From positions 1 through 64,000 of the forward strand of contig NIVC01001689.1 in the NCBI GenBank assembly GCA_002269645.1: a DNA stretch of 64,000 nt, written 5' to 3'. Position numbers and translations under genes: made by a program. The notes under the pieces were generated by a model. It did no database searches. It had not been told where the DNA came from and worked only from the letters and a program-made list of their open reading frames with translations. Below, piece by piece: positions 1 through 47,100 of this stretch (within the stretch, counting starts at the first letter, position 1; each line of letters opens with the position of its first letter). The stretch is from Macrostomum lignano (lineage: Eukaryota).

Positions 1-19
1 GCAAAGCACTGCAGAACTC

Positions 20-4975: not shown

Positions 4976-5002
4976 TACAGCAGTCATAACCCTGTTTCGG
5001 GA

Positions 5003-5200
5003 GGTCATGGCCCTGCTATGAGAGGTCATGGCCCTGCTATGAGAGGTCATGGCCCTTCTATGATAGGTCATGGCCCTGCTATGAGAGGTCATGGTCCTGC
5101 TATGAGAGGTCATGGCCCTGCTATGAGAGGTCATGGCCCTGCTATGAGAGGTCATGGCCCTGCTATGAGAGGTCATGGTCCTGCTATGAGAGGCCATGAC
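5003..5200. repeat. 21-bp minisatellite (GAGGTCATGGCCCTGCTATGA)
   Basis: Adjacent to the 23-bp array and shares its GTCATG core. Confidence 0.9.
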
Positions 5201-6850: not shown

Positions 6851-6927
6851 AAGCAGTGACTCTAAACTCGGATGCTGATGACAACAAAGGCCATTGAAAA
6901 GCCAGTTGGGTGCGCAGGACAATGAAT

Positions 6928-9900
6928 TCAATCTTGACCTGCAGCAGCCCCTAAAAGCTCCGCAGTCCGCTGCTTGACCCCCAGCGCTCCGAGCCGCTGG
7001 CCGGGTTCCGGGTGCCACAGCGCTTCCAGCAGGCCGTCGGCGAGGACGCGGCAGACGGGACCGCCGGCCAGCCAGGCGTCAGCAGGCAGGGCGGGCCTGG
7101 CGCACCGCGGCCGGCACACCAGCTGGCGCATGTCATCCAGGCTGGGATTGGCTGGCGCCCACTCGGCGTAGGGCAGACTGTAGGGCCCGAGGCAGCGCTG
7201 GCCGACCTCCCACAGCACCAAGCCGAGGGCGTACAAGTCGGCCTGCTGGAGGTTCGCGAAGCTGCCGAGCGCCGGACCGCCGTCAAGGAGCTCCGGGCTC
7301 AGGTAGCGGACAGTGCCAACTCGCCTGCGGTTTCGCACAAAATCAAAGGATTAAAAACCCTTCCCGCAACTTCATGGGAAAGATATACAATTGAACTCAA
7401 TGGGATTAAAATCCCACAACGTAACTCAATGGGGATTCAACTCCCACAATGTAACTCAATGGGAATTAAAATCCCACAATGAAACTCAATGGGGATTCAA
7501 CTCCCACAATGTAACTCAATGGGGATTAAAATCCCACAATGAAACTCAATGGGGATTCAACTCCCACAATGTAACTCAATGGGAATAAAATCCCACAATG
7601 AAACTCATGGGAAAAAAATCCCACAATGTAACTCAGTGGGGATTAAAATCCCCCAATATAACTCAATGGGGATTAAAATCCCACAATGTAATTCATGGGA
7701 ATAAAATCCCACAATGTAACTCAATGGGGATTCAACTCCCACAATGTAACTCAATGGGAATAAAATCCCACAATGAAACTCAATGAGGAATAATATCCCA
7801 CAATGTAACTCAATGGGGATTCAACTCCCACAATGTAACTCAATGGGAATAAAATCCCACAATGAAACTCAATGAGGAATAATATCCCACAATGTAACTC
7901 AATGGGGATTCAACTCCCACAATGTAACTCAATGGGAATAAAATCCCACAATGAAACTCAATGAGGAATAATATCCCACAATGTAACTCAATGGGGATTC
8001 AACTCCCACAATGTAACTCAATGGGAATAAAATCCCACAATGAAACTCAATGTGGATTAAACTTTCACAATGTGACTCATGGGGATTAAACCCCGACAAT
8101 GTAACTCAAAGTGTATTATTAAACTTCCACAATGTGACTCATGGGGATTAAAATCCTAAAATGTAACTCAATGGGGATGAAAATCCCACAATCCAACATG
8201 ACAAAATAATGGGGATTAAGGCCAAAAATCAGTTCAATGAGAATTAAAATTGAAGAGGCAGACAGAGACAGACCTGTCCCCATCCCGCCGCAGCTCGTCA
8301 GTCTCCCTGACGGCCAGTCCGAAGTCCGCCAGGCAGCAGGTGAGGTCGGCCTTCACCAGAATATTATTCGATTTCACGTCGCAGTGCGCGATGCCGGGCT
8401 TAACGAAACCGGCCGAGATGAGCTCGGTGTGCAGGTGGGCCAGGCCGGTCACAATGCTGTGGCACATGCCGGCTGCCACCCGACAGCTGATGCTGTGCTC
8501 CATCAGGTAGGTCTGGCCAATGAGAATGGGGCAGAGTGAATCTCAGCTCTGAGATTATCGCTGACACAGATAATCTTACACCTGTACCGATAGAGTCTGA
8601 GACTATCACTGACACAGATAATCTCACACCTGTACCGATAGAGTCTGAGACTATCATTGACACAGATAATCTTACACCTGTACCCATAGAGTCTGAGATT
8701 ATCACTGACACGGATAATCTCACACCTGTACCGATAGAGTCTGAGATTGTCACTGACACAGATAATCTCACACCTGTACCGATAGAGTCTGAGATTATCA
8801 CTGACACGGATAATCTCCCACCTGTACCCATAGAGTCTGATATTATCACTGACACGGATAATCTCACACCTGTACCGATAGAGTCTGAGATTATCACTGA
8901 CACGGATAATCTCACACCTGTACCGATAGAGTATGAGATTATCACTGACACGGATAATCTCACACCTGTACCCATAGAGTATGAGATTATCACTTACACA
9001 GATAATCTCACACCTGTACCGATAGAGTATGAGACGATCACTGACACAGATAATCTCACACCTGTACCGATAGAGTCTGAGACTATCACTGACACAGATA
9101 ATCTTACACCTGTACCCATAGAGTCTGGGATTATCACTGACACAGATAATCTCACACCTGTACCGATAGAGTCTGAGATTGTCACTGACACAGATAATCT
9201 TACACCTGTACCCATAGAGTCTGAGACTATCACTGACACAGATAATCTTACACCTGTACCCATAGAGTCTGGGATTATCACTGACACAGAGATAATCTCA
9301 CACCTGTACCCATAGAGAATGAGATTATCACTGACACGGATAATCTCACACCTGTACCGATAGTCTGGGATTATCACTGACACGGATAATCTTACACCTG
9401 TACCCATAGAGTATGAGATTATCACTGACACAGATAACCTCACACCTGCACCGACACTATAAGGATATCAAATGACGGAGAATAGCTATGGCTATAAAGG
9501 GCGACCATCCTCAACCCCCAACGCAGCCGCAGACCTGCAGGGACCCGTTGGCATGGTAATCGGTGATCAACCACAGCTGAGTTTCCCAGCCGGCGTCCAC
9601 GTTGTCAATAGCGATGAAGCCCAGGATGCTGGGGTGCGCCAGGCCAGGCGTGGCGTAGATCTCGCCTTCCCGAGACCAGGAGGCCTCCACCCGGCTGTGA
9701 AAAATCTTCACCGCCACCGTGTCGCTGACCTCTCCGGTGCGCCACGTGCCCTGCGATGACAGACGGGAGCAATGGGATTTTGATAGACTTATGTCTGTCT
9801 GTTTTAATGTCTGTCTGTTTTAATGTCTGTCTGTCTGTTTTAATGTCTGTCTGTTTTAATGTCTGTCTGTTTTAATGTCTGTCTGTCTGTTTTAATGTCT

Positions 9901-10379
9901 GTCTGTTTTAATGTCTGTCTGTTTTAATGTCTGTCTGTCTGTTTTAATGTCTGTCCGTCTGTTTTAATGTCTGTTAGTCTGTTTTAATGTCTGTCCGTCT
10001 GTCTGTCCGTCTGTTTTAATGTCTGTCCGTCTGTTTTAATGTCTGTTAGTCTGTTTTAATGTCTGTCCGTCTGTCTGTCCGTCTGTTTTAATGTCTGTCT
10101 GTCTGTTTTAATGTCTGTCTGTTTTAATGTCTGTCTGTCTGTTTTAATGTCTGTCCGTCTGTTTTAATGTCTGTCTGTCTGTCTGTACGTATGTTTTAGT
10201 GTCTGTCTGTCTGTCTGTCCGTATGTTTTAGTGTCTGTCTGTCTGTCTGTTCGTCTGTTTTAGTGTCTGTCTGTATGTATGTCTGTCTGTCTGTATGTCT
10301 GTTTTAATGTCTGTCTGTCTGTTTTAGTGTCTGTCTGTCTTAATGTCTTAGTGTTTGTACGTCTGGCAGTCTGACTATC

Positions 10380-10430
<51 letters not shown>

Positions 10431-10433
10431 TAA

Positions 10434-10472
<39 letters not shown>

Positions 10473-13400
10473 TTGTCCGTCTGTCTCTCTTAGTGTCTGT
10501 ACATCTGTCTGTCTGTCCGGCTGTCTTAGTGACGTTAGTGTATGTCTTACGAGCGTAGAGCCTGGGCTCCAGGCCTCCATCTCTCACCCTGAAAACCTGG
10601 CCAAACCGGCCCTGCCCGACCGGGCAATCCACCGTGGTGTCCCTGGCGATGGTCCGCCTAACCAGGTGCGGATTTCCGTAGCCGCTGCTGGAACAGCCCT
10701 GCTGCTGCTGCTGCCGCCAAACCGACGCCAGCTCATGCTGATGAAGCTGACCCTCGGCCCCAGCCTCCTGCTCCTGGTGCAGCCGCTGCATCAGCACATT
10801 TTGATCTCGCACGCTGTCGGCATCGGCGGCGCCACCCCGCCGGCCTCGGAAGAGCCGCAGCCGGGCCAGCAGGCGGTTCAACTTGTCGCGCCTCGGCAGG
10901 CCGCCGCAGCACCAGCAGGCGAGGACCAGGCCGGCGGCGGCAGTGGCCAGGGCCGCTAGTCCTACGAAGCCGGCGACAGCGCTGGCGAACGCCGAGGCCG
11001 CCGTCCAGCCGCCTGGCTGCCTGGGCGGGCCGAAGCGCAGCTGGCTTAAATTGGAGAGCCGCACCACCTGCTGCTGAGCATCGATCAGCGGCATCGCCTC
11101 GGCCAGGTTGCAGAGACTGCCGTTTTTGCAACAATTTCTGCCCGGCGACAGGTGGCAAAATGAGCCAGCTAGCAGAGACACCGTGGCGTCGGACTCGGCA
11201 GATGGGGAGTCAGCAATTAACTGGCGGCGAGTCAGGCACCTGGGTGTTTTGGGGAGATTAGAGGCATGGGGAGCAGTCTGTCAGCTGGGTGTTTTGGGGA
11301 GATTAGAGGCATGGGGAGCTGTCTGTCAGCTGGGTATTTTGGGGAGATTAGATACATGGGGAGCAGTCTGTCAGCTGGGTGTTTTGGGGAGATTAGAGGC
11401 ATGGGGAAGTCTGTCCATGCTTGGGGCTCAGTAGTCAGGACTCAGCAGAAGGGGCATAACTGCCTGCTCAATGGCTGCAAGTCCTACCTACTTCAAGTAC
11501 TAGCTCAAGTAGGATGGGAAACTACATTTCTTGAAAACATTTAGGAAGCAGGTTTTACCAAAAATACATTACAGAGATAGGGGGTTATAATTTTTTTAGT
11601 ACTCAGGGTTTATCTTTTAATATGTCTTATCTTTTATATAGCTCTATTGATATGCATAAGTTTTTATTTATTTAAGATTCTTTGCTTGTTTTAAATCAGA
11701 CATCTGATTCAGTAAATCATCATATTATTTTAAGTAGCAAAGAATAAAAAACATAGGATTAATTGTCCTGGTTTTTTAAGTACTCCATGATAAAATCCCT
11801 ATTGAAAAGAGTTGCTAAATGATAGACAGCTATCCAGCACATCTAAAAAATGACTGCAGTGCAATACAATGTGACATTTGGTGCTGCGCTTGGAATCCAT
11901 GTCAAAACAGTCAAGCACAGAATGGCCTAAATGTCATAAGTTAGCAAAGTTATTTGGAATGCTTTATGTAACAATGCTGCTTATATGTGCCACCACTGCT
12001 AAAGCAATGCAAAGTGCCAAAAAGTTGCTTTATTGTCACAATGCCTCTTAGGCCCAGGTGTGCACTTGGTGACCCCTTGATATAGCCTATGTACTTTGGA
12101 GAGTGGCCCTTTAGTACATTTTTGCTAGACCCTCTATATGCATCCATGCATTCTTAGATTTTATTTTTAGTACATAGAACTAAAATAGGGAATGAAAGGA
12201 TCATAATCATTTCAATAACTTGACATTTCAGTGACAGTTATTTTGGTGACAAGCAAGTCATTTCAGTGACAAGAAAAATACCCATTGGTGATAGCCATTT
12301 TGTTTTTAAACAGTAAATTACCTTGCAAATCTTAAGGGATATCAAGCCTTAACTTTTTAATAATTTTCTGCAATGGTTGACCATTACTTTATTTAATTTT
12401 GTTTATTTACAATTCTAGAATTGCAATCTTTTGAATTGATATGTTTTCCAATCTAATTCCAATTGTGTCTAGTGAATATATATATCTACTATTCTTGTAG
12501 TTAGGCCCTAGCATTTCATGAAGATTCTCTATAGGTTTATGGTTTTTGTGTCTAAATATTCTGGGACAATTCAAAATGATCTGCACAGAAAGAAAAGCAT
12601 ATAATTAGTTTGATTTCTTTTCCTACATATACTAATCTTTTGATAGAAATTTTCAAATATAAACAAAACATGAATCTTAACAAAATAACTACAAGCTGAT
12701 ATTATTAAGCACTTTCTGTCACTAAAATGACTATAATTATAAATTCTTTATTTTTTAACAAAAACAAAGTTTGTTTATAACAAAAGCAACTTGTCACCAT
12801 AATGACTATTTATCACCAAAAAGTCTGTTACCAAAATGACTTGTCACCAAAATGACCAAAACCTAAATGAAATGACTTACTAGATAAATAAACAAAGTCC
12901 TTAAGGAAGAAGTAATATTAATTTTTACAAGTATATTAGTTTTGCAATAGTTCATACTATTATATTAAAATTTTAAATGTATAAGAAAGTTATTACTATA
13001 AAATTATTAGAAATTATAATTGTAAATATTCAAATATTTGTATATTCACTCAAAATAGACATATGTATAGAAAGAAAGAATAACAAAATTCGAAAAGACC
13101 TCATTGGTTTATGCCGGTTTCCATGCATTTCGGTGCCCGTGCTTTTCGGTGCCCGGCATTTCGGTGCCCCAGATTGCTTTTCGGTGCCTCAATTTATGAC
13201 GCCAAAATGATGATAATAAAAAAGAAATCCAATAAACGTTCAAAATGTTCGATATTCCTAATAAAAGCAGTGTTCATTTTGTTAAGCTGGCACGCTTCTT
13301 AAATTTAGAAAAATCCGGTCAATTTAATTGCATGCATTTGCTGTACAGTACGTAATCATGTAATATACAATACAATCTGGCGGCACTCAGCAAGCGTGCC

Positions 13401-25646: not shown

Positions 25647-27022
25647 TCAGTTGCCTGCAGCGCTTGCCGTTGCGCTTCTGTTCACTGATGAGGGAAGCTG
25701 CGGCTGCACCTGGCGAAGCTGCTGATTGGGCTTGCCGGACTGGTAGTAGGACCTGCGCACTGCGGGTGGGGCAGTACCAGTCAGTGTAATAACTGCCTCC
25801 TCTGTGGCTTTTGTATTAACCTCATCACGCCAGCACCATCTCATTCTCTTGTCTCACTCTACTCTCCCATCTCTCTACTCTCTAACTTAAATATACTCTC
25901 CTATCTCTCGACTACTCTCCCATCTCTACTCTCCCATCTCTCTACTCTCCCATCTCTCTACTCTCCAATCTCACTCTACTATCCTATCTCATTCTACTCT
26001 CCTATCTCCCTCTACTCTCCAATTTCAAACTACAAATAAATATTCAAATTGATTGCTAATCTAGCCCACATGGATGCAGGAATAGATTGCTAATCTAGCC
26101 AGCAGGAATGGATTGCTAATCTAGCCAGCAGGAATGGATTGCTAATCTAGCCCACATGGATGCAGGAATAGATTGCTAATCTAGCCAGCAGGAATGGATT
26201 GCTAATCTAGCCAGCATGGATGCAGGAATGGATTGCTAATCTAGCCCAAATGGATGCAGGAATAGATTGCTAATCTAGCCAGCATGGATGCAGAAATGGA
26301 TTGCTAATCTAGCCAGCATGGATGCAGGAATGGATTGCTAATGGATTGCTAATCTAGCCAGCATGGATGCAGAAATGTATTGCTAATCTAGCCAGCATGG
26401 ATGCAGGAATGGATTGCTAATCTAGCCAGCATGGATGCAGGAATGGATTGCTAATCTAGCCAACATGAATGCAGGAATGGATTGCTAATCTAGCCAACAT
26501 GAATGCAGCAGGAATAGACCAGATTGCTAATCTAGCCCACATGGATGCAGGAATGGGTTGCTCTCAATCAGCCTCACCCAGGTCGTCGATGTGGTCGGAC
26601 ATGGACAGCGTGACGCCCACCAGGATGACGCAGATGGCCAGCAGCACGAAGGCCACCGCCATGACCACCCGGGCGATTCGCTTCTGCTTCTCGGTCGGCG
26701 GGCTGGCCTCCGAGTTGATGACCACCGTGGGCGGATCTGGCGGCAGAAGGTCGTCAGCGTCGCCGGAATAGCTGTTCAGCAGCTCGATGGGCGAGATGGG
26801 CGCCAGCTCCACGCCGAGGCTGAGGCCGCCGCCGCCGACGCCGCTGCAGACTGTGGAGGCGGCGCCGCACCATCTGTCAGTTCGAACGTCGTCTTCGATG
26901 TACACCGTGTGGTGCTGCTGATGCTGGTGCTGGTGTCGGGGATGCTGATGATGATGCTGATGGTGATGCTGGTGATGCAGCAGCTGGCAGTGGTGGCAGA
27001 ATGCCCGGTCAGGCTGCAGCAT
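25647..27022 (-). CDS. Uncharacterised single-pass membrane protein with His/Gln-rich N-terminus, 185 aa
   Basis: Exons 27022-26578 (GTGAG donor) and 25759-25647 (CAG acceptor), phase 1. TM segment KQKRIARVVMAVAFVLLAICVILVGVTLSMSDHIDDL-VRRSYY. Confidence 0.7.
26050..26550. repeat. 34-bp minisatellite in the membrane-protein intron
   Basis: GGATTGCTAATCTAGCCAGCATGGATGCAGGAAT units with deletion variants. Confidence 0.9.
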
Positions 27023-27184
27023 GGCTGCCCTGGATTTGATTCGCAAAGGTGTTGAACTCCTCCTGGCACTGCAAAGGTGTTGCAGTCAATGAATTACGAT
27101 GAATTAGCCTCTCACAGGGTGGCACTTTTCACATTATCACTGTCATCTGACATAACAAAAATTTCTATCTGACATAAAATCGCT

Positions 27185-28255
27185 ACCATCTGAGACAATA
27201 AAACTGCTACCATCTGACACAATCAAAGCTACCATCTGACACAATCGAAGCTACCATCTGACACAATCAAAGCTACCATCTGACACAATCGAAGCTACCA
27301 TCTGACACAATCAAAGCTACCATCTGACACAATCGAAGCTACCATCTGACACAATCAAAGCTACCATCTGACACAATCGAAGCTACCATCTGACACAATC
27401 AAAGCTACCATCTGACACAATCGAAGCTACCATCTGACACAATCAAAGCTACCATCTGACACAATCGAAGCTACCATCTGACACAATCAAAGCTACCATC
27501 TGACACAATCAAAGCTACCATCTGACACAATCAAAACTACCATCTGACACAATCAAAGCTACCATCTGACACATCAAAGCTACCATCTGACACAATCAAA
27601 ACTACCATCTGACACAATCAAAACTACCATCTGACACAATCAAAGCTACCATCTGACACAATCGAAGCTACCATCTGACACAATCGAAGCTACCATCTGA
27701 CACAATCAAAGCTACTATCTGACACAATCAAAACTACCATCTGACACAATCAAAGCTACCATCTGACACAATCGAAGCTACCATCTGACACAATCGAAGC
27801 TACCATCTGACACAATCAAAGCTACCATCTGACACAATCAAAACTACCATCTGACACAATCAAAGCTACCATCTGACACAATCAAAGCTACCATCTGACA
27901 CAATCGAAGCTACCATCTGACACAATCAAAACTACCATCTGACACAATCGAAGCTACCATCTGACACATCAAAGCTACCATCTGACACAATCAAAACTAC
28001 CATCTGACACAATCAAAACTACCATCTGACACAATCAAAGCTACCATCTGACACAATCAAAGCTACCATCTGACACAATCAAAGCTACCATCTGACACAA
28101 TCGAAGCTACCATCTGACACAATCAAAGCTACCATCTGACACAATCAAAGCTACGATCTGACACAATCAAAGCTACGATCTGACACAATCAAAACTACCA
28201 TCTGACACAATCAAAGCTAACATCTGACACAATCAAAGCTACCATCTGACACAAT
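27185..28255. repeat. 22-bp minisatellite (CTACCATCTGACACAATCAAAG)
   Basis: About 48 near-identical units. Confidence 0.95.
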
Positions 28256-29953
28256 TGTCAGATTGCACAGCTGGGCAAAAACGGCAAAAAATTACCAAAA
28301 TCCGATCAGCGTAAGAAGCAGAAATCTGCGGCCTCACTCTGCAGTGATTGTCAATAATTTAGCAGGACATTCGGCAGTCGCAGGCGGGCAGCGCAAACGC
28401 CAAGCAGATGTCAAAAATTGCCAACCGGGGCTGAAGCGGAATTGGCAGCAGCGGGTTGTGTCATGCCAGCGACTGCAGCACAATGGAGCCACTTTATGCC
28501 TTGAGTCCCGGCCTCTGCCCTCCAATCCGCTTCCCCAATAGTTATTAATTTTTGCTCTCGAGCACGTAGGAGTCCTCACTGACGTCAATGCAGCAGAAGC
28601 AGTAGGGGAGCTTGCTATTCAACTGCTTTATTCCCAGCAGCCGGGAGATGCAGATCGGGAGAGACAAAGCCGGGAAGTGGCTGCTAAATTTGGAGCAGGC
28701 TGGGCGTCTGAATGTCTTTTGTTTTTATTTCCCGAGAGAGAGAGAGAGGCCCTGATTGAAAGCCTCTCAAAGCAGTTTGTCTGTCTGTCTCCCGCTGTTG
28801 CAGAAACTGCTTTTAGCAGAGGCCTGCCTGCTCGATTGGCTGGAGGAGGTGTCGCTAGCTAGGAGTAAAGTCACGTCTTATCCGCCTGGGGAGCTGAACA
28901 CGCGCCAGCCAAGCTCAGCTGCTTTGCTTCCTTTCTTGTCCTCCTCCTGGGCTGCCCTCTCCCTGCCGATTCCACCCACCCCCCGCCCCGAGTTAATAAT
29001 AGCAACTGCTTTGCGTGAGTGCGCGGCTGAGCAGGCGGACTAAGAGGCTTGGAAAGGGGAGCCGAGGAAGGGGCAGAAATAACTGCCTGAGGACTGCAAG
29101 CAGGGAGAGGGGAGTCAGTGGGTTTGAGAGCGGGACAGAGGGAGAAATACAGTGCCGAAAATCCCCATGCTGTCTGTACCAGACCGCTCGGGCCTGGGCA
29201 GAGTGGGCCGGATTGAAAATTGGATATTTGGTCCCGTGGCTCACAAGCCCGTGTAGACGCACTCCGAGTGTAGGCTCAAGCGCGATATTAGAGACGCGGA
29301 GATTGAAGTACGCTTGGGCACACTTCTCAAGTCACTCTTTGCCACCCCCCGCCTCCTTCTCATCCGCTCTGGAGGTGAATTGATGCAGATAGATCGATAG
29401 AAGCCCATATGTATGTGTGTTAGCGGAACGGCCGGAGGGAGAAAGCAAAGGCAACGATTGGAGAGCACGAGCAAAACATCCTACCGCCCTGTATGGGCAA
29501 CTTACGAGACACGAGTATATTTGGAAAGCATTCGAAAAAAACTACGAGCGCTCGTATTTGGAAGAGTAAAAGGTAAATGAAGCGAAAGGAAAAAAAATAA
29601 GTTGCAGGAATTGCGAGAAAGGGGGGCTAAAAGCAGAAAAAAACGCACGCAAGCTGGCGAGGAGAGATAGGCTGAGGCGGGCACAACGCACGGGGCTAAA
29701 AAGGCCCCACAGACACCCACCCCCGCCCCGGGGGCAGAGCACCCACCCCCGGACCAAGCACTCCCAAACACGGGCGACGACAAGCCCCCCGGCCCCGCTA
29801 ACAGCGATTGGCCAGCCAATCTACACTTAGCGGAACGGCCGGAGGGAGAAAGCAAAGGCAACGATTGGAGAGCACGAGCAAAACATCCCAAAAAACCCCG
29901 AACAAAGGGATTAAAGAGTAGGGTACACGGCGACGGGGCGAGTTAGGCGAGCG

Positions 29954-30985
29954 CTAGAGAGGTGCCGACAGCACACGGTTGACCATTGGGCGCAGGAGAC
30001 GGAGGCAGCCTCCCGACTGCGGCAGGTAACGTGAAACGGCGCCGCTGCGCCAGCCGCCCAGCCGCTTGATCTGCTCCACGTCGAGGCCGCTGTCGAACGC
30101 CAGACAGGCGCCACCCCGTCGTAGAGAGTGGCCTGAGAAAGCTGTCGCCGCCCAACCTGCATCTGCCAGAGCCCGAGCGAGGCGGCGATCGAATTGACGC
30201 GATGTCATCGGGCACCAGCTTCCGGCGATGTGGACGCAAAACAGCCGAGTGAGCGCCGGCGCAGACCGCAGCTTGTTAGTCTGAAAATGCTGCCGCAGGG
30301 CTTGGACAGGACAAAGTGGGTGGCTTCCGAGTACTGGCAGCACCGCCTCCTGGTAGTCTTGTCCGCATTGGTTGGTCTTCGATTGTCGAACTCGGAGTCT
30401 CCAGCACTGACCATCGGCCTGAGCGTCGCTGACGAGAATGGAGTGGCGCCCGCAGACATTTGCTTTCCTGAGAAGTGCCCAGAAGCAGCAGAGCACGGCG
30501 GCCCAAAAGGCGGCGTCTGCAGGGTCTCTTGGGTTCACCTGGTTTGCCAATGAAAGCAGAACCGCCGGGGTGATGGGGTCTTTCTGCTTGACTGAATGGC
30601 GGCTTGTCCGTTTGGCGCTTTTAACTGCCAGATCGATCAGGCCGGACTTGGTGATGTCGGGGAGTTGCGCCAGCTTGAAGCTCCAGCTGATGGCCGCCAG
30701 GTGACCACCGAGGCTACCGGGTGCCACGCCGCGCTTAGCCAGGCGTCGCACATACTCGACCAGGTGCACCGGGGACGCCGCTAGTGGCTGAACACCTTCG
30801 AGGTTGCAGAAGCGCTGCCACTGTTCGACGTTTGAAGCGTACGATGCCCTCGTACTAGGAGCCCAGGCGTCGGCGAGGAAGCGAAGGAGCGGCCCGGGTA
30901 GGCGGGAGGCAGGAGGCGCCGGACCTGCAAAAGCAAAAGGGAGGCGGAGGCAGGGCAGAGCGCGTGGCGCGAGATGCAGCAGGAT
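29954..30985 (-). CDS. Tyrosine recombinase of the retroelement
   Basis: Frame open from 30985. N-terminal AWAPSTRASYASNVEQWQRFC, LLRKAN (R), SKTNQ (K), HSLRRGG, GGW, SRYL (Y). No in-frame ATG before the catalytic region. Confidence 0.9.
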   Translation of the reverse strand: MLLHLAPRALPCLRLPFAFAGPAPPASRLPGPLLRFLADAWAPSTRASYASNVEQWQRFCNLEGVQPLAASPVHLVEYVRRLAKRGVAPGSLGGHLAAISWSFKLAQLPDITKSGLIDLAVKSAKRTSRHSVKQKDPITPAVLLSLANQVNPRDPADAAFWAAVLCCFWALLRKANVCGRHSILVSDAQADGQCWRLRVRQSKTNQCGQDYQEAVLPVLGSHPLCPVQALRQHFQTNKLRSAPALTRLFCVHIAGSWCPMTSRQFDRRLARALADAGWAATAFSGHSLRRGGACLAFDSGLDVEQIKRLGGWRSGAVSRYLPQSGGCLRLLRPMVNRVLSAPL

Positions 30986-32691
30986 TCAGCAGCTAAATCA
31001 TGCAGGCTACGGTAGAAGCGGAGAAAGAAATTCTGCGCCCCGCTTCTAGAAGCAAGGCGAGAGGCCGGGTCCGCCAGGACCTGGAAGGCGCCTGGAACGT
31101 GAAAGGCCCGCAGCCGCAGACCCCACGCGTCGCAGGCAAGCGACAGCGTGTGCAGGAGCCGGTTGACGTCGTTACATGGCGAGCTGAGCTTGTTCAGCGC
31201 ACCGACAGCCGCCGAGCTGTCGCTGTACACGACGATGTCCGCGCCGGCGAAGCGGCCCGGGGCCGCGAGGATGCTGAGGACAGGCGTGATGGTCTCCTTG
31301 ACGTTGATGTGGGCCGAAGCAAAACGGCCACCAGCGTCGTTCTTCCAGTTGATGTAGAGCCAGTCGGACTTATTGGCCTCCCGAACAATGCAGGCACCAC
31401 CCGAGTTACAGGCGTCAGTCTCGATGACGATCCTTCGAGCGTAGCGAGGCCAGATGGGCGCGCAGCCAACGGACTGAAGGCTTCTCCTCCACCAGTGCAG
31501 CAACTCGGTGAGGTGCGGGGCCAGCCGCAATTTGTCACCAGGTCTAGTCGCCCGGCTCGCCAGCATCAGTAGAGGGCGGATGGAAGCTCGGCCTTTCCTG
31601 GTCACGCTGCTCACCCAGGACAGCTTGCCGCAGATCCGCTGAAGGTCGCGCTTGCTGATGGCACCGCGTCGATGCAAGCAGCTCCCAAGTGCGTCTTCGA
31701 GTGCACTGAGCTTGGCCGGTGGGATGCTCAGCGTCCCCGACTCCGTGTCAATCAGGACGCCCAGGAAAACCGTGCGCCGCGACGGCCCGCTAGACTTCTT
31801 TTCGTTGATGGTAAAACCGAGGCTCGTCGCCAGGCTCCTCAAGTTCTCGTAAGCCTCGACACAGGCCTCGTAGGTGCTCCCGGCCACAGCGAAGTCGTCG
31901 AGGTAGCCAACGCAGGTGAACCCGCGCCGTTGCATCATGCGCACCACCGCCTTAGACAGCCTGTTAAAATGGTACACCGAGGCCGCAGCGCCGAAGCTCA
32001 GCCGGGTGTCGACCAGGTAGGTAGGCTCGCTGTCGCCGCTAAATTGCCATTTGATGCCCAGAGCGTCGAGAGAAGAAGGATGAACACCTACTGAGCGATA
32101 CGCCTCCTTAAGATCGATCTTGGCCGTGAAGTCACCGGGCTTGAGTTGTGAGCAGAGGCCGCTAACCGTCTCAAACTTAATCTTGTGGTCTGCGATAAAG
32201 TGGTCGTTGACCGCACAGCCTTCCGGACGACTGCAGTCGTGGATGATACGGACTCCACCGTCCTCTTTCGGGATGGCACCAAGCGCGGAGATCTTGCACG
32301 GACGTCGGCTGACAGACACATACCGCCCTCTGGCGATCTCACGCTGCAATTGCTCTTCAACCAACGTCTTGTACTCAATGGCGGACGAGTAGTTCTCAAC
32401 TTCGGAAGGCTTAAAATCTGTTTCAGTAGTGAGCGCGAAGCCGTTTTGGACTCCGTAAATTAAAAAAGGCCCGTCGGGGTCGCCGTCCAGCTCCTTCGCC
32501 CAGGCATTTGCGTCAAGGGAGCCACTCGGATTGAAATTGATGTCGCGAATGGAGTAAAAACTTGGAATTAAAACTTGCGGCTGCCAGCTTGCCGGATCCA
32601 CTGGAGCCGCGGCTATTCGTTTTTTACCACGTGTTGCGTCTCGGCGTGGTCCGAGCGCAAGCAGACCCGGCACGCATGCGTGTACTTGCAA
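30781..32691 (-). CDS. Reverse transcriptase-RNase H of the retroelement
   Basis: RIIHDCS, KIDLKEAY, LSFG, YLDD; RNase H motifs IETDAC, HINVKE, YSDS, ADPASR; uninterrupted. Confidence 0.93.
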   Translation of the reverse strand: MQVHACVPGLLALGPRRDATRGKKRIAAAPVDPASWQPQVLIPSFYSIRDINFNPSGSLDANAWAKELDGDPDGPFLIYGVQNGFALTTETDFKPSEVENYSSAIEYKTLVEEQLQREIARGRYVSVSRRPCKISALGAIPKEDGGVRIIHDCSRPEGCAVNDHFIADHKIKFETVSGLCSQLKPGDFTAKIDLKEAYRSVGVHPSSLDALGIKWQFSGDSEPTYLVDTRLSFGAAASVYHFNRLSKAVVRMMQRRGFTCVGYLDDFAVAGSTYEACVEAYENLRSLATSLGFTINEKKSSGPSRRTVFLGVLIDTESGTLSIPPAKLSALEDALGSCLHRRGAISKRDLQRICGKLSWVSSVTRKGRASIRPLLMLASRATRPGDKLRLAPHLTELLHWWRRSLQSVGCAPIWPRYARRIVIETDACNSGGACIVREANKSDWLYINWKNDAGGRFASAHINVKETITPVLSILAAPGRFAGADIVVYSDSSAAVGALNKLSSPCNDVNRLLHTLSLACDAWGLRLRAFHVPGAFQVLADPASRLASRSGAQNFFLRFYRSLHDLAAESCCISRHALCPASASLLLLQVRRLLPPAYPGRSFASSPTPGLLVRGHRTLQTSNSGSASATSKVFSH

Positions 32692-33242
32692 TTCTGGAAC
32701 TTGCAGCCACCACGGGTGTTGAACTTGAGGCAGACGGGCGCTCCTTGAATCACCGGAATCTTCCTGTCCATGCGAGAACGGGCATGTTGTGGAGTCTGCT
32801 GCGGGGCGATGAGGTGCCGTGCCACCAGCGAGAAACTCGGTCGCGCCCAGTCTTGCATGCCCGCCTGCTGCTCTCTTCTGAATGCGTCGTCGAACCGCAT
32901 GATCCTGGTGGTGTCGTAACCTGCCTCGACCAGCTCACCGATCTGCACATTGTACTGCAAGTACTGCCGAACGCCTTCCAGGTCGAGCTGTCCCCTAGAG
33001 ATCAGGGCGTCGAGGATGCGCGCGTTGCCGACTATCCACTGACCGATTCCCAGCGATTCGGGTTTAGGCTGATTGGCGGTTGGATGCAGCACCTTTTCCC
33101 TACGACTCGCCGACGCCGTCCGAGGGTCGCAGCCGCAGAAATCCGCAACGACGAGTGGGGCCGCCCGTAGCCCTAGTTGAGCTACTGAGGGCTCGAGCCT
33201 GGTCTCGAACCCGGGACCTCTGAGCATACTCGGGATATTCAT
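32613..33242 (-). CDS. Gag-like ORF1 of the retroelement
   Basis: C-terminal Cys/His motif CLKFNTRGGCKFQNCKYTHACRVCLRSDH typical of DIRS-order gag; overlaps the RT frame. Confidence 0.8.
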   Translation of the reverse strand: MNIPSMLRGPGFETRLEPSVAQLGLRAAPLVVADFCGCDPRTASASRREKVLHPTANQPKPESLGIGQWIVGNARILDALISRGQLDLEGVRQYLQYNVQIGELVEAGYDTTRIMRFDDAFRREQQAGMQDWARPSFSLVARHLIAPQQTPQHARSRMDRKIPVIQGAPVCLKFNTRGGCKFQNCKYTHACRVCLRSDHAETQHVVKNE

Positions 33243-33344
33243 GTCGCTACTACAATCAGAGGGAAATTCGTGCCAAAAAAATTTATGATCCTCGCCAGTG
33301 TGACCGCGCGGCGCTCAGTTTATCTGGCCAATATATCTTGCAGC

Positions 33345-34325
33345 GCTGCTGGGCCAGCCTCCCAGATCCTCAGTTGCTGGGCCAGCCTCCCAGATCCTCA
33401 GTTGCTGGCCAGCCTCCCAGATCCTCAGTTGCTGGGCCAGCCTCCCAGATCCTCAGTTGCTGGGCCAGCCTCCCAGATCCTCAGTTGCAGGGCGAGCCTC
33501 CCAGATCCTCAGTTGCTGGCCAGCCTCCCAGATCCTCAGTTGCTGGGCCAGCCTCCCAGATCCTCAGTTGCTGGGCGAGCCTCCCAGATCCTCAGTTGCT
33601 GGCCAGCCTCCCAGATCCTCAGTTGCAGGGCGAGCCTCCCAGATCCTCAGTTGCTGGCCAGCCTCCCAGATCCTCAGTTGCTGGGCCAGCCTCCCAGATC
33701 CTCAGTTGCAGGGCGAGCCTCTCAGATTCTCAGTTGCTGGCCAGCCTCCCAGATCCTCAGTTGCAGGACAGGCTCGCAGATTCTCAGTTGCTGGACCAGC
33801 CTCCCAGATCCCCAGTTGCTGGGTCAGCCTCCCAGATCCCCAGTTGCTGGGCCAGCCTCCCAGATCCCCAGTTGCTGGGTCAGCCTCCCAGATCCCCAGT
33901 TGCTGGGCCAGCCTCCCAGATCCCCAGTTGCTGGGTCAGCCTCCCAGATCCCAGTTGCTGGGTCAGCCTCCCAGATCCCCAGTTGCTGGGTCAGCCTCCC
34001 AGATCCCCAGTTGCTGGGCCAGCCTCTCAGATCTTCAGTTGCTGGGTCAGCCTCCCAGATCCCCAGTTGCTGGGCCAGCCTCCCAGATCCCCAGTTGCTG
34101 GGTCAGCCTCCCAGATCCCCAGTTGCTGGGTCAGCCTCCCAGATCCCCAGTTGCTGGGCCAGCCTCTCAGATCTTCAGTTGCTGGGTCAGCCTCCCAGAT
34201 CCCCAGTTGCTGGGCCAGCCTCTCAGATCTTCAGTTGCTGGGTCAGCCTCCCAGATCCCCAGTTGCTGGGTCAGCCTCCCAGATCCTCAGCTTCTGGGCC
34301 AGCTTCTCAGATCCCCAGTTGCTGA
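33345..34325. repeat. 28-bp minisatellite (CCTCCCAGATCCTCAGTTGCTGGGCCAG)
   Basis: Direct periodicity; the three long + ORFs are repeat artefacts. Confidence 0.95.
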
Positions 34326-35059
34326 GCCCAACCCAGGCTTAGAGTTGCCAGACTTAATTTTTATTACAAATATGAAAACTTGAAGTCAAAATTCCTTGCC
34401 AGCACAAGCTGAACTTGCTGCAGCATAAAAGCGACATCGAGATTGCTCAATCACAGCGAAACGAAATCGAGTGGATTAAAAAATACCAAGCTGCTCAACC
34501 CCCCGTTATTCAAGTGCTTGACGAAAGCAGAAATTTGTTGAATTATAAAATATCAGCTGTAAAAGCGTCAGCCAAGAAGGGCAGCGGTTTGGTGCAACAG
34601 AAGACCTTCAGTTTCCATTGCACAGTCAGCTGAGAATTCGCATTTTGCAGCAGTAGCTTCGGTCCTGCCCATAGACAATAGACAGCAAGCAAGTTGAGAG
34701 TTCGGCCATAGACATCCCAGTAAAATAAGGATGCCATCAGACAAGGATTTCTAAATCTAGCAACTGGAATGACAACTGAAATAGCGGTGAGGACTTTTTT
34801 ATACAAGACAAGCTGTTGAAACCCGCGGATTTTGAACCCGGGGAATTTCAATCCCCGGAACTATTTTTGCATGTATTCTAAAATCTGAGGTCTAACTCAA
34901 ACAAAAACTTGTTAATAGTTACGAAAGAGTTAAACATAAAATAGAGTACACATTTGTGTAAAATTAGGATTTGAGGCAAACATTGATATTGTTGGCTAGG
35001 GTGCTGCGCAGAATGCCAGGCAAACTCTGGCAGTCTGGCTGGCCTCTGCCTCTGCATCT

Positions 35060-35318
35060 GCCTCTCTGTCTCCCTATGCCCCTTGGATCCTTTGAAATTT
35101 CTATCTTCTCTTCTGTTTCCTCTTTTCTCTCTCGTCTCTTGTCTCTTACTTCTCTTCTCTTCTCACTCCTTACTCTACCCTTTCAACACTTCCTTCATCT
35201 ACTCCTCTCCCCTTTCTCATCTCTTCTCTCAACTCTCTCCTCTCCTCTCTCCACTCTCTCCTCTCATCTCTTTCCTCACCTCTTTTCTCTCTTATCTCTT
35301 CCCATTACTCTCTGCTTG

Positions 35319-35382
<64 letters not shown>

Positions 35383-36240
35383 TCTCTCTCTCTCTGCTCT
35401 CTGCTCTCTGCTCTCTCCTGTCTCATCTGTCTTCTCCTCTCTCATCCTTTCCCCTCTTTCCTCTCTCTCTCATCCTTTCCCCTCTTTCCCTGTCCTCTCG
35501 ATTCTCTCCCCTCTCCTCCCCTCCTCTTCCTCACTCACTTCTCTCTCCCTTTGTCTCACCTCTCCTCTTTTCTCTCTACTCTCCCATCTCTCGTCTGTTC
35601 ACTCTTGTTTCTGCTCTCTTATCTCCCCTCTCTCATCTGTCATTAATCTCTTATACTCGTGTGTTCTCTCACCTCTCTCCTCTGTACTCTTCTTTTTCCC
35701 CCTCTCTTTTCTTTCTCCTTTCTTCTCTTCTCTTCTCTTCCCTCTTCTATACTCTCTCCCTCTCTTGTCTTCTCTCTTCTCTCTCCACTCTCCTCTCTTC
35801 TCTCATATATCGTCTGTTCACTCTCACCTTTGCTCTCTCATCCCCCTTTCCCTTCTGTCATCTCTACTCTCCTCTCTCCTGTGTACTCTTCTCTTTCCCC
35901 TCTTGTATACTCTCTCCCCTCTATTCTCTTCTCCCGTCTCTCTGCACTCTGCTCTCTCTTCCTTCATCTCTCATCTCTACTCTCTTCTCACTCTTCTCTA
36001 CTCTCCTCTCCCATCGATCCTCTGTCTCATCTCTCCCCTCTTCTCTCTCCCTCTTCTCACCTTTACTATTTCCTCTCCCTCCTCTCTCCCCTCCTCTTGC
36101 TTCTTCCTCCCATATACTCTGCTGTCTGCTCTCTCCTTACCCCTCATCTCTCTTATTATCGTCTATCTTTTTTCTTACCCCCTCTCGCCCCTCCTCCCTT
36201 TCTAATAGTCTATTCCTTCTCCTTTTCACTCTCATCTGGC
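35060..36240. repeat. CT-rich low-complexity tract including (CT)n
   Basis: Almost purely pyrimidine. Confidence 0.9.
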
Positions 36241-41168: not shown

Positions 41169-44100
41169 TTAGTTGTCGCCGCCGCCGAAGAAGCGGCCTC
41201 GCTTGGCTGGTGGGCCGCCGCGGCCGCCGCCACCGCGTCCTCGGCCGCCGCCGCGACCTCCACGGCCTCCGCGACCGCCGCGACCGCCGCCGCCGCCGCG
41301 ATTGGCGCGGGACTCGTACTGCTGCTGACGGGCCTGGAACACCAGGGCCCACAGCCTGTCCTCCTCCTCGCCAGTTGGCACCGTGCCAGTCAGCTCGGCG
41401 TCACGAAATTTCACCGAGCCGCCTTTGGCTTCGCACAGCTTTGCCCAGGCCGGGGCGGCTGAGTTCTCCTCCTTGAATCTGCGGAGTGTGGACGATTCTG
41501 GGGTCTGGTGGCCGATTCTGGGGAGTCTGATGGGCGATTCTGGGGAGTCTGGTGGGCGATTCTGGGGAGTCTGATGGGCGATTCTGGGGAGTCTGATGGG
41601 CGATTCTGGGGAGTCTGATGGGCGATTCTGGGGAGTCTGGTGGGCGATTCTGGGGAGTCTGATGGGCGATTCTGGGGAGTCTGGTAGGCGATTCTGGGGA
41701 GTCTGGTGGGCGATTCTGGGGTCTGATGAGCGATTCTGGGGAGTCTAATGGGCGATTCTGGGGAGTCTGATGGGCGATTCTGGGGAGTCTGATGGGCGAT
41801 TCTGGGGAGCAGGGACTACTCAATTCTCGGGACGGGAAACGGCCAAATCATGCAGAAAAAAGATGGAGGCCGATTTTCTCTGCTCTCTGCTGATCTTATG
41901 TTTTATCGCAAGAGCTTCAGCTTTTCACTATGTACACAAAATTTATCCCTCTTCAACTTCCTGTAGCCTGTTTCTACTCAAATAATTTCGGATAAATGCT
42001 AGGAGACATTTTATACAGTACCCCTTTAATACACAAACTCGATGCTTGATAAGCCAAGTGCATCTGTTGTAGAAGTCTATGGGAAACACTGAAGCAAGAA
42101 GTGAAAGCTTGTATTATGTGATGGCCTAAAAGGTAAGGACTGATACCATAGAATGCAAATAAATAGTCAACTTTGGACTCCTCTGTGAGTTAACTTGGCT
42201 GGGTAGCCACGACACGACAGAAATTTTCATTTGCTCTTCCTAATTTTGCTTTGCGTTTTTTCGCATTCATGCCAAGGAAATGCTGTGTGCAATCATGCAA
42301 GTCGAACTATTTGAACGAAAAAACTTCTGTTAAAGTCTTTACTTTCCCAAACGATCCTATAGAGAAGGAAAAATGGCGACTGGCTCTACCAAATTTCATC
42401 AAGGTGAGTCGAGCAGTAAACTGGTAATAATGAAATTCGTGATTTTACTCTCTGCTGGGCAAGTTGGAGAGACAGTGCATTGTCTCTCTTGTTCGGAAGG
42501 ACAAGTTTTGCGAGGTATTGTTTCTGTAGCACACCGCTCATAATTCTACAGGATCCAACACCGCATATGGCAGTATGCGAGAAGCACTGGCCAATATCAG
42601 TGCCAATGATAAAACGCAGCAGATATGAGCGACCTGTCGACCCGCCGTCCGTCTTTGACGTTGCAATTCCCCCATCATGTTTTGTTCAATCGAAATGTGA
42701 GAATTTGTCAATACATAAACTGTACACGTATTGTGCTACCAACATACAAACGATTCTCCATCGCATTGCTTACGTCCATAATTTTAGCATTAGCGAGAAA
42801 ACCAAAAGTCCGTCGCGTTTTGTCTGCCGAAAGAAATTTTAAACCGGACGAGTTGGAAGAATTTCGTAAAATCGACAGTTTGCCAGGCTGGAGCGAGCTC
42901 GTTTCTGCACTCAAATCATCAGATATCGTTGCTCAACATTCGCTGTTTGTATCGTTATGCAATGAAGAAGTTTATTTGTTTGGTTTGGATTCGAGCGGAG
43001 AACTAAAGATCAAGATTTTTATTTCGTCCAACTTTGCAACTCGTGCTTTTCACTATCATTCGCCGGTTCCGCTGAGAGATCTGCTAGGATTCCAGCCTAC
43101 ATTGAAGTATTTTTCACAACTCGATGCCATTATCGTTCGATGCATGAATTTTCAACTGTCTGTTCAGCATGAGTTGAAAGCGATGTCGTCGTCATTTCTT
43201 CAAGTGTTGGAATTAGAAAATACTGTCATCACGAATCCATCGATACAGTTTTTAATTTCACAACTACAGCTAATTTCTACAAGTCCAGTGAGTCGTCGGT
43301 ACGACATTGCCACACTAAGGCAGTCAGCTCTTATCTATTTAATCAGCAGTTCGGCTTACTCTCAACTTCGCACTCTGTTGCCACTGCCACATCAAAGAAC
43401 TCTCCGTACAAATTTGGCCGGTCTTGGAGAGATTGGAACTGCAGCCGATTCTGATGAAACTATTCGAACAGTTTTTTCTGCACTTCGCGGCACCCAGCTG
43501 AACTGCGTTTTACTATTTGACGAGATGTACGTGCAGCCATCTGTCAGATTTAGATGTAAACATCTGTTTGGACAAGCGGAGGACGACTCGGCGAAAATTG
43601 CTCGGACAATTCTGGCGATAATGTTGAAGCCGCTAATGGGTGGAAAACCATTCATATTGCGCCTTATACCAATTTTTCTACTCACAGCCGAATTTCTCAA
43701 ACAGCAACTAAGTCAAAGCATTGAGTTGGTCAACAAGCATGGTGGTACTGTTTTCGCTTTGGTTTGCGACAATCATCCTACTAACAGAAAATGTTTTAAT
43801 TTGTTCAGAGATCAGCAGCAAAACAAGGATTGGATTGGACGAGACGTCAATCAGACTAGTCAATTTTTTATGATCAATGACATGGTCCACTTGTTGAAAT
43901 CGATAAGAAACAACTGGCAGACTGAACAGAAGGGGACTATAGCACTTCGAATTCCGGGATGCGACAGAGTCATTTCGGCGAAATGGAGTCACATCATTCA
44001 TGTCTTTAAGGCTGAACAAAACCACGTTGTCAGACGAACAAATCTCACTCACGGGGCATGCTACCCAAATGGAATTCAGAAAACCTGTGTTTCTCTTGCT

Positions 44101-47100
44101 CTGCAGGTATTTGATGACAAGGTAGTAGCTGCTCTTGCGTGCGATGGATTCCACGATACTGCAAAGTTTGTAGAATCTATTGTTAAGTTTTGGAAAACAG
44201 TTAATTGCCGCAACCCTTATTTGCACAAACGACTGAACGATCCTGATCGAAAGCCAATTTCCTCGATTTCGGACGAACGTTTAGTATTCTTAAGTGCCTT
44301 GGCACAGGCTGTGTCTGAACGTGGCGGTGGTAGAGGACGAAGTCGACATCAATGCCTTACGACCGAGACCAAAAACGCATTATGTAACAGTCTGTTCGGT
44401 GTGGTAGAAAAGTGTCACCAACTGCTGGAAACCGGTGCTATGCAGTATGTTCTGCTATCAGAATTCAACACTGATCCTTTAGAAGGTGAATTCGGAGTCT
44501 ATCGCCAAATGAGTGGAGGCAACTATTTTATTTCAGTCGAACAAGTTTTTCTTAGCGCCCGACTGAGACGAATGAAGCTCTTTACATCGCTTGAATTGTC
44601 CGACTTCAGTCACCAACAGAGCCACTGCTGCGACAGTCAACTATCAGATGAGGAATTAGGGACAGTCGACAGTTGCTGCATTTCTGCGGAGAATTTGACA
44701 TCGCATGAGAATGCTGCCCTATATTACATTTCAGGAAAGTTTCAAATTGCTTCTTCAAGCAATTTTGTATTCTTGCACGAGTATAATAATGTTCGTATAT
44801 ATATCTACTTTCATTTATCTTTTTGCTTTTAACTACCTAGGCTACGTTGCAGCAAAGGAAGGAATTCCCGCTGACGCAGAAGCAGCACGAAATGAACCAT
44901 GCGAATTTACGGAGCTTGTTTCCCGTGGAAAGCTAGCGCATCCACCAGAATGGCTTTTCCAATTCTCACGCCTTTGTTATGCTAGCTTCACATCATATTC
45001 ACCAAGCTGTGCAACCCGTGTGCAACAGATATTCAATGCTATCGCCGAATATTTCTTTCCAGACAAGGACATTCATACCACTTCGGTGACTCGTCGCCTA
45101 TCAAACTGCTTTTTCAAAGGACTTGTGCGAAACTGCAAAACTGCAGAACAAACACCAGACGCAAGTGATCGTAAAATCACAAAGCTACGCAGTTCATCTC
45201 GTTTATAAGCGCGATAGATACCGACTGAGACTACTGGATTACGAATTCGATTTGTCGCATTGCTTATATTTGCTTACTACTATTGGGATACTTTGTTATG
45301 CTTACTTTGTTTGTTCTGGTTCATGTGCGTTTTGCACTTGCTTGTGGTTCTCTTGCCTTTTGCTCTTATCGTGTTTATTGTTCTTTATATGCTTGTTGTG
45401 AATGTTGTGTTTCTTGTATTTATGCATTTGGTGTTGTTGAATAATTCTAGTGCACAATAGTGTGTATTCTAGCGCGATCGTTCTCCAAATCTTGGTATAC
45501 ACGTACTGACTATATACAACAGTTTTGTTAATCTTATATCTTATGTTGAATAACTTCTCGTATAATACAAGCTTTCACTTCTTGCTTCAGTGTTTCCCAT
45601 AGACTTCTACAACAGATGCACTTGGCTTATCAAGCATCGAGTTTGTGTATTAAAGGGGTACTGTATAAAATGTCTCCTAGCATTTATCCGAAATTATTTG
45701 AGTAGAAACAGGCTACAGGAAGTTGAAGAGGGATAAATTTTGTGTACATAGTGAAAAGCTGAAGCTCTTGCGATAAAACATAAGATCAGCAGAGAACAGA
45801 GAAAATCGGCCTCCATCTTTTTTCTGCATGAAATGGCCGTTTCCCGTCCCGAGAATTGAGTAGTCCCTGCTGGGGAGTCTGGTGGGCGATTCTGGGGAGT
45901 CTGATGGGCGATTCTGGGGAGTCTGATGGGCGATTCTGGGGAGTCTGATGGGCGATTCTGGGGAGTCTGATGGGCGATTCTGGGGTCTGATGGGCGATTC
46001 TGGGGAGTCTGATGGCCGATTCTGGGGTCTGATGGGCGATTCTGGGGAGTCTGATGGGCGATTCTGGGGAGTCTGATGGGCGATTCTGGGGAGTCTAATG
46101 GGCGATTCTGGGGAGTCTGGTGGGCGATTCTGGGGAGTCTGATGGGCGATTCTGGGGAGTCTGATGGGCGATTCTGGGGAGTCTGGTAGGCGATTCTGGG
46201 GAGTCTGGTGGGCGATTCTGGGGTCTGATGAGCGATTCTGGGGAGTCTGGTGGGCGATTCTGGGGTCTGATCGGCGATTATGGGGAGTCTGATGGGCGAT
46301 TCTGGGGAGTCTGATGGGCGATTCTGGGGTCTGATGGGCGATTCTGGGGTCTGATGGGCGATTCTGGGGTCTGATGGGCGATTCTGGGGTCTGATGGGCG
46401 ATTCTGGGGTCTGATGGGCGATTCTGGGGAGTCTGATGGCCGATTCTGGGGTCTGATGGGCGATTCTGGGGAGTCTGATGGGCGATTCTGGGGAGTCTGA
46501 TGGGCGATTCTGGGGAGTCTGGTGGGCGATTCTGGGGTCTGATGGGCGATTCTGGGGTCTGATGGGCAATTCTGGGGAGTCTAATGGGCGATTCTGGGGT
46601 CTGATGGGCGATTCTGGGGAGTCTGATGGGCGATTCTGGGGAGTCTGGTGGGCGATTCTGGGGTCTGATGGGCGATTCTGGGGAGCCTGACGGGCGATTC
46701 CAGAGCACACCAAGATCAATAAGAGTTACCTGGCATAGAGGACTGACTCGTAGAAGTCCAGATAAAAGTCCTTGCCAAAGGCGTCGCCCAGTTCGGCCCG
46801 CAGGTCCTGGAACAGTATGGTCAGCTTGGCCTTGTCGTTGGGCTCCGAGACCCCGTCAATCCTGAGCAGGCTGCCGCGGACAATTTTAGCCTTCAATTTC
46901 TCCTTGTCGATGGCCGCCTTGGCTTCGAGTCGTTTCGCTTCGATCTCGGCGCGGCGCTTTGAGTTCTCCTGGCGCTGCAGCTGAGTGCGCTCCTGGTGGA
47001 TTGTGGCGGCGTGGATTCCAGAGTATCTGTTACTAAGGCATTGGGATTTGTGCTGCTATGCGATTGGGATTTTGTTGCTATGTGGGATTTTGTTGCTATG

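Follow-up and report, generated by a model that had tools for sequence, protein, structure and literature searches.

The 64,000-nucleotide window analyzed here, from Macrostomum lignano contig NIVC01001689.1, carries on its minus strand a retrotransposon with three successive reading frames: gag, reverse transcriptase/RNase H (RT/RH) and tyrosine recombinase (YR) (Table 1). The gag-like open reading frame (ORF) has a CCCH-type zinc-knuckle region (C-x8-C-x5-C-x3-H) at its C terminus. In Pfam searches the RVT_1 match fell in a 636-aa ORF and the Phage_integrase match in the next ORF, and alignment with relatives showed that the invariant RT and RNase H-like residues are present in the RT/RH frame. 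Downstream of YR, two repeat copies (B1 and B2) flank 345 nt, as fits split direct repeats arranged B1-A2-B2. Pfam matched no methyltransferase domain within the 636-aa ORF, nor is there space for one, since the end of this ORF is overlapped by the YR frame; a distant protein match that carries PF05869, which we take to be a Dam-type methyltransferase, is only ∼27% identical. Absence of this domain separates Ngaro from DIRS1-like and PAT-like elements. Because it is without a methyltransferase domain and its 3′ end fits split direct repeats, the element is assigned, from domain content and repeat architecture, to the Ngaro-like rather than the DIRS1-like tyrosine-recombinase retrotransposons. 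An earlier reading of the DNA letters alone (the sequence-only reading) had called it a DIRS-order element; the pairing of RT with YR bears this out, and the assignment is now refined to Ngaro-like. Our subject is the junction of gag and RT, where the same reading had placed a −1 ribosomal frameshift cassette.

Table 1. Positions of the element's reading frames, junction features and repeats in the window.
Feature	Position	Strand	Description
gag-like ORF	32613..33242	-	209 aa from first AUG; from ORF analysis and homology to upstream ORFs of 49 related loci
RT/RNase H frame	30781..32934	-	Pfam RVT_1, E = 1.5e-13; stop 30783-30781; entered at 32619 if shifted
Tyrosine recombinase (YR) frame	29954..30985	-	Pfam Phage_integrase; -1 relative to RT/RH
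Slippery heptamer A_AAA_AAC	32619..32625	-	X_XXY_YYZ phase in gag (zero) frame; direct reading
Spacer GAAUAGCC	32611..32618	-	8 nt, heptamer to hairpin
gag stop UAG	32613..32615	-	one codon past the heptamer
Putative stimulatory hairpin	32577..32610	-	5′ arm 32610-32600, loop 32599-32589, 3′ arm 32588-32577
Splice-acceptor-like site UCCGCCUCCCUUUUGCUUUUGCAG|GU	30925..30948	-	ends at 30925; 62 nt upstream of the YR N-terminal motif; probable entry to YR expression
Split direct repeat copy B1	29827..29888	-	62 nt; repeat family D9; 100% identical to B2
Split direct repeat copy B2	29420..29481	-	62 nt; probable 3′ end of the element

The gag/RT junction

A canonical −1 frameshift signal consists of an X_XXY_YYZ heptamer, a spacer of 5–9 nt and a stable downstream RNA structure. 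On the minus strand the 3′ end of gag reads ...CAC GUG GUA AAA AAC GAA UAG, and the heptamer A AAA AAC (32625-32619) lies in the gag frame, as the sequence-only reading had it. That reading was also right about the 8-nt spacer and the hairpin arms (32610-32577), which fold as (((((((((((...........))))).)))))) at −17.5 kcal/mol. The stem comprises 11 bp (10 Watson-Crick and one G-U), is interrupted by a single bulged C and closes an 11-nt loop. Equal stability is reached by only 0.28% of 34-nt windows from the coding region of the element, and in a 50-nt comparison the hairpin is within the lowest 5% of local control windows. The RT frame is the −1 frame of gag, again as first described (codon starts 33242 mod 3 = 2 vs 32691 mod 3 = 0, minus strand). 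It is open from 32934 across the heptamer and overlaps gag by 322 nt; in this overlap A_AAA_AAC is the sole in-phase canonical heptamer. The expected lack of an early AUG was found as well: the first AUG of the RT frame, at 31938, is 229 codons 3′ of the heptamer, inside the RT domain and past the RT motifs IHDCS and KIDLKEAYR. Because it lies beyond these conserved motifs, an AUG-initiated product would be unable to act as an RT.

The junction has an in-phase heptamer, an 8-nt spacer followed by a stable hairpin, and a −1 open frame with no usable start; among relatives, conservation exceeding that due to coding was found for the heptamer and only partly for the structure. In-phase heptamers occur at only 0.39% per codon in the gag bodies of relatives (43 of 11013 sites); a heptamer two codons before the gag stop together with one of the element's most stable hairpins at 8 nt is no chance arrangement. 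Judged from sequence, this Ngaro-like retrotransposon likely has a programmed −1 ribosomal frameshift signal where gag meets RT.

From the established model of −1 frameshifting we infer the slippage itself, its efficiency and the role of this hairpin as stimulator. A ribosome on GUA AAA AAC would have its P and A sites occupied by tRNA-Lys and tRNA-Asn, respectively, while the GC-rich hairpin 8 nt downstream, at the mRNA entry channel, would oppose unwinding. Some ribosomes would then slip one base in the 5′ direction (AAA AAC to A AAA AA) and go on in the −1 frame, giving a Gag-RT/RNase H fusion with the junction ...HVVKN-RIAAAPVDPASW.... Other ribosomes would terminate one codon on at UAG and yield Gag alone, which would set a retrovirus-like ratio of Gag to Gag-RT.

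The copy in the window is judged to be 5′-truncated because no A1 repeat copy was found in the 64 kb, although the full scheme is A1 ... B1 A2 B2, because the N-terminal part of gag is missing and because a satellite array adjoins the 5′ side. Its gag aligns only with the C-terminal halves of the relatives' gag and lacks the N-terminal ∼120–200 residues; the array (33347-34328) has 35 copies of a 28-nt unit. Since the copy is truncated and may never be translated, the signal is best taken as a feature of the family that need not be in use at this locus.

Conservation of the junction among related loci

The RT search of a protein collection gave a closest match of 45% identity. In all, 86 related loci were collected (six contigs retrieved by exact look-up of their proteins, and 80 loci from metagenomes), with RTs 34–45% identical to that of the window; a search with gag gave no match at E ≤ 1e-5. 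RT sequences were aligned (relatives are cited here by L numbers), and loci were classed by frame if the upstream ORF had at least 100 codons, which was the case for 68 loci, the window included. Upstream ORFs of at least 300 codons were checked and found homologous to the window gag. RT lies in the −1 frame of gag in 36 loci (31 non-redundant, window included), in the same frame with a single stop between the two in 23, and in the +1 frame in 9. The RT genes of the relatives had been annotated from internal AUGs. The nearest relative, L001 (45% RT identity), is too truncated for class assignment; the end of its gag reads UCA AAA AAC UAG.

Of the 31 non-redundant −1 loci, window included, 27 have an in-phase X_XXY_YYZ heptamer (Y being A or U) no more than 27 nt from the gag stop, at a point where the RT frame is open as well. 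In other words, a heptamer in equivalent position and phase is present in 26 of 30 non-redundant relatives of this class, and in L001 besides. Six heptamer types are in use (AAAAAAC 20, CCCAAAA 5, GGGAAAC 3, CCCAAAU 2, UUUAAAC 1 and GGGAAAA 1), some loci have two overlapping sites, and the flanking codons are not conserved. Near the gag stop the two wrong phases hold 1/279 and 2/279 heptamers (3/558 in all), vs 32 in phase. The binomial P for the enrichment is ∼1e-35, an estimate made before allowing for shared ancestry. The gag stop directly follows the heptamer in 11 of the 27 heptamer-bearing loci. The RT/YR junction provides an internal control: it has a −1 overlap in 31 loci, none of which has an in-phase heptamer near the RT stop. 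The comparison strongly supports the original proposal of a Gag-RT fusion made by −1 frameshifting, and with most relatives carrying the signal it is very likely that the group makes such a fusion as retroviruses do.

The other two classes have distinctive junctions of their own. Among the 23 same-frame loci, 14 gag genes end in UGA (10 of them followed by C) and 9 in UAG (8 followed by G). No UAA occurs among these 23 stops, vs 12 among the 40 of the shifted classes (Fisher p = 0.0024). UGA-C and UAG-G are leaky readthrough contexts, and by their sequence these stops look like programmed readthrough. The class includes L006, L014, L016, L022, L028, L034, L038, L041, L054, L065-L067, L071, L072, L076, L079 and L081. 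Of the nine +1 loci, seven group as a single clade in the RT tree (L015, L018, L020, L021, L024, L029 and L037), and all seven have an identical CGU UUU CGU in the gag frame within the overlap, with neighboring proline codons that vary synonymously. Its UUU CGU core matches the +1 frameshift site described for influenza A PA-X (PMC8310308). Because sister lineages show either UGA/UAG stops or a candidate CGU_UUU_CGU +1 site, the sequences support the view that the gag/RT boundary is a recoding site throughout the group.

Downstream structure and competing explanations

Several observations weigh against a canonical signal or against a role of the hairpin in it. In its 91-nt context the region reaches a modest z = −1.71 against dinucleotide shuffles, with 11 of 200 shuffles equally stable. 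The pseudoknot prediction called for by the sequence-only reading returned no convincing partner (loop vs the 70 nt downstream, at most 5 bp including wobbles), and Rfam gave no match at E ≤ 1 in 29000–34000. Across the 27 heptamer-bearing loci the mean z against local control windows is −0.52, and only 6 of the 27 are in the lowest 10%; downstream structure is not general in the −1 class. No closer relatives or extra copies were found for a covariation test of the window hairpin, and within the window blastn and tblastn of the element found only the element itself. The relatives share a common ancestry, so the binomial P overstates independence. Finally, the canonical heptamer is missing in 4 of the 31 non-redundant −1 loci (the L030 group, the L042 group, L051 and L083), one of which looks degenerate. 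C_CCC_CAA two codons before the stop is common to the sister groups L030/31/33/35 and L042/43/44, and the gag of L051 ends in CCU UUU UAG; these may be non-canonical P-site-only shift sites. The check for conservation that had been proposed came out in favor of the heptamer; the hairpin proved not to be conserved class-wide.

In one rival account −1 shifting would indeed take place at the heptamer, and the hairpin at 32610-32577 would be incidental GC-rich structure. Stimulation would then come from the adjacent stop codon, an undetectable pseudoknot or a trans factor, or else shifting would be unstimulated and low-level. The inconsistent structure among relatives, with many loci lacking any notable fold, fits such an account, as does the gag stop directly after the heptamer in the 11 loci mentioned above, and a GC content of 59–63% in the element makes stable local folds easier. 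The hairpin nevertheless belongs to the most stable 0.28% of 34-nt windows, GC-rich as the element is, and its distance from the heptamer, 8 nt, is canonical. Furthermore, L001 has a hairpin of like architecture 6 nt past its heptamer, with the same outer stem as the window (GCGGC/GCCGC) and a bulge on the 3′ side. Its inner stem (GGCCG/CGGCC, vs CCAG/CUGG in the window) is altered yet still complementary, and the linker peptides differ. This change would look like selected RNA structure, seen in two sequences only. The two hairpins were compared by eye; pair counts from RNAalifold were uninformative and the MAFFT alignment was out of register. Strong folds at suitable spacing are also present in L013, L046, L069 and L070, while L012 and L082 have no fold. 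We regard an incidental hairpin as rather unlikely. The heptamer is the conserved core of the signal, and the stimulator is either lineage-specific or invisible to minimum-free-energy folding; a stimulatory role of the hairpin is inferred for this lineage only. In many loci of the −1 class (L023, L039, L049, L074, L083, L085 and L011), C-rich tracts (e.g. CCCCACCCC) replace the hairpin in the first ∼40 nt past the gag stop. They may code for a proline-rich linker or be another kind of stimulator.

The remaining explanations dispense with ribosomal slippage altogether. RT might be made from a spliced mRNA, by non-AUG or internal initiation, or by termination-reinitiation at the gag stop, and the sequence-only reading had named splicing and internal initiation as the outcomes that would tell against it. 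The family does appear to use the spliceosome for its downstream YR (see below), and 6 of the 31 −1 loci have an RT-frame AUG upstream of the conserved N-terminal block. In the other 25 there is none, however, and that of the window comes only 229 codons in, which disfavors internal initiation. Splicing is disfavored in turn, with no conserved acceptor before RT: the best acceptor-like sites there are weak (mean pyrimidine fraction 0.58) and scattered, with phases split 23/21/18. None of these routes accounts for the in-phase heptamers that 27 of 31 loci have near the end of gag, and RT synthesis by such means seems to us very unlikely. Slippage of RNA polymerase II or of the element's own RT on the A6 run, giving transcripts with one A more or less that fuse gag to RT, is more improbable still. 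It would suit the commonest site, AAAAAAC, with its run of six A, but 7 of the 27 sites (GGGAAAC, GGGAAAA, CCCAAAU or UUUAAAC) have no run longer than three or four bases. Short-run heptamers such as GGGAAAC fit tandem tRNA slippage and are poor sites for polymerase slippage, and the strict X_XXY_YYZ phase (32 in, 1 and 2 out) is a property of ribosomal rather than polymerase slippage. Last, the frame offset could reflect decay, that is, a mutation in a dead copy, with heptamer and hairpin coincidental. The truncation of this copy beside a satellite array is in keeping with decay, but the RT/RH and YR frames are intact across >900 codons, and the −1 offset with an in-phase heptamer recurs in the relatives counted above, which makes decay scarcely credible.

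The proposed frameshift has close counterparts in known systems. Retroviral and LTR-element −1 signals at gag-pro and gag-pol (e.g. MMTV gag-pro) likewise combine a gag-frame heptamer, a 5–9 nt spacer and a stable structure, with an enzyme ORF in the −1 frame that has no start of its own and a zero-frame stop shortly after the site. The window element differs in having a tyrosine recombinase instead of a DDE integrase and no protease; its stimulator is seemingly a simple bulged hairpin, and structure is variable or absent among relatives. Gammaretrovirus-type gag-pol readthrough resembles the 23 relatives with a single UGA or UAG and is not the strategy of the window element. The influenza A PA-X type of +1 site, shared with a seven-locus clade of what are cellular retroelements rather than an RNA virus, is absent from the window element. 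With Ngaro elements (Goodwin & Poulter 2004; Poulter & Butler 2015; Xenopus families in PMC9210276) the window element shares the order gag, RT/RNase H and YR on one strand, overlapping ORFs, the absence of a methyltransferase domain and the 3′ direct repeats B1, 345 nt, B2. It differs from them in that the window copy has neither a 5′ A1 repeat nor the N-terminal portion of gag, and in that a canonical shift signal is found at gag/RT and none at the YR junction.

In two Xenopus Ngaro families all ORFs overlap, with the mechanism not stated (PMC9210276). The literature searched contained no description of a gag/RT frameshift for this retroelement group, although Goodwin & Poulter 2004 and Poulter & Butler 2015 may mention one; the only frameshift proposal found for tyrosine-recombinase retroelements concerns the YR ORF. 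That proposal was made for Ngaro by Poulter & Butler 2015, as quoted in PMC13003380. The statement of the sequence-only reading that the expression route of these retroelements is not well established was fair, and the quoted YR proposal is the one qualifier to it. Mechanistically this is the textbook retroelement case; the novelty lies in documenting it, backed by comparative statistics, for Ngaro-type elements. The expression of tyrosine-recombinase retroelement proteins has so far been left at overlapping ORFs, and for RT the site offers a specific answer that is cheap to test. Because gene callers cut up or shorten RT ORFs of this kind, their annotation can be improved. In addition, the relatives form a natural series, with six heptamer types with and without structure, for studying the requirements of eukaryotic −1 frameshifting.

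Recombinase expression and other features of the window

The YR frame of the window, in the −1 frame of RT, has no AUG before residue 259 of its open frame. A second −1 frameshift at RT/YR was considered and rejected: none of the 31 −1 loci has an in-phase heptamer near the RT stop, and the frame relation between YR and RT is split across loci (−1 in 31, +1 in 28, same frame in 3). A polypyrimidine tract with YAG, on the other hand, lies 56–81 nt before the YR N-terminal motif in all 31 anchored loci, and in 29 of the 31 it has one codon phase. Because heptamers are missing, the frame is variable and the acceptor is phase-constant, a splice acceptor explains YR better than a frameshift, and the sequences indicate that YR is probably expressed from a spliced mRNA. 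A spliced YR message does not fit the frameshift proposed for YR. The acceptor-like site before YR was recorded across loci L003-L080. A strict search for splice donors near the gag AUG came back mostly empty. In a relaxed search on the gag alignment, donor-like AG|GUGAG or AG|GUAAG sites in the matching phase 1 cluster in one mid-gag region, a cluster that codon usage confounds, since GGU GAG and GGU AAG occur often and sites in phase 2 would bring in stop codons.

On the widest reading of the comparisons, the gag/RT boundary would be plastic, with lineages interchanging the −1 shift (six heptamers), UGA-C/UAG-G readthrough and a UUU_CGU +1 site of a type otherwise seen in RNA viruses. YR would be expressed separately from an mRNA spliced from a phase-1 mid-gag donor to a phase-1 acceptor closely preceding YR, giving a Gag(N-terminal)-YR fusion in place of the proposed YR frameshift. 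We give this combined scheme about an even chance of being correct. If confirmed, readthrough, the UUU_CGU +1 site and a spliced message for YR would mean that recoding motifs known from viruses also serve mobile elements of cellular genomes.

An optional SGNH/GDSL hydrolase ORF, described for Ngaro-like families (PMC9210276), is another trait that the window's relatives share with Ngaro. In L003 (374-916) and L005 (1164-1670) gag is closely preceded by a GDSL/SGNH lipase-like ORF, and L005 has a NADAR-domain ORF in addition. In the window, no SGNH hydrolase or other domain was found in ORFs upstream of gag or downstream of YR. Locus L002 (ENA ERZ23499208 scaffold_526, 1-7367) contains two tandem gag-RT units that repeat every 3656 nt, and YR was not detected there; this reflects either an assembly that is tandem or circular or a derivative of the family that lacks YR.

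Further tandem arrays surround the element at 26047-26562, 27182-28255 and 35215-36058. These neighboring arrays include 15 copies of a 34-nt unit, 49 copies of a 22-nt unit (95% match) and a long TC-rich low-complexity tract. On the plus strand, 42625-44832 holds an intact 735-aa ORF with Pfam TNP-like RNase H N-terminal and GTP-binding insertion domains, which is presumably a P-element/THAP9-type transposase and, if so, would mark a second, unrelated mobile element. On the minus strand, an exon-like ORF at 10375-11181, which points to a metazoan host, has a transmembrane stretch and a kinase-domain-like start (GQGRFGQVF) and runs into a TDRQ-coding tandem repeat; it gave a weak match to the TGF-beta type I receptor GS motif (20.9 bits vs a Pfam cut-off of 21.3).

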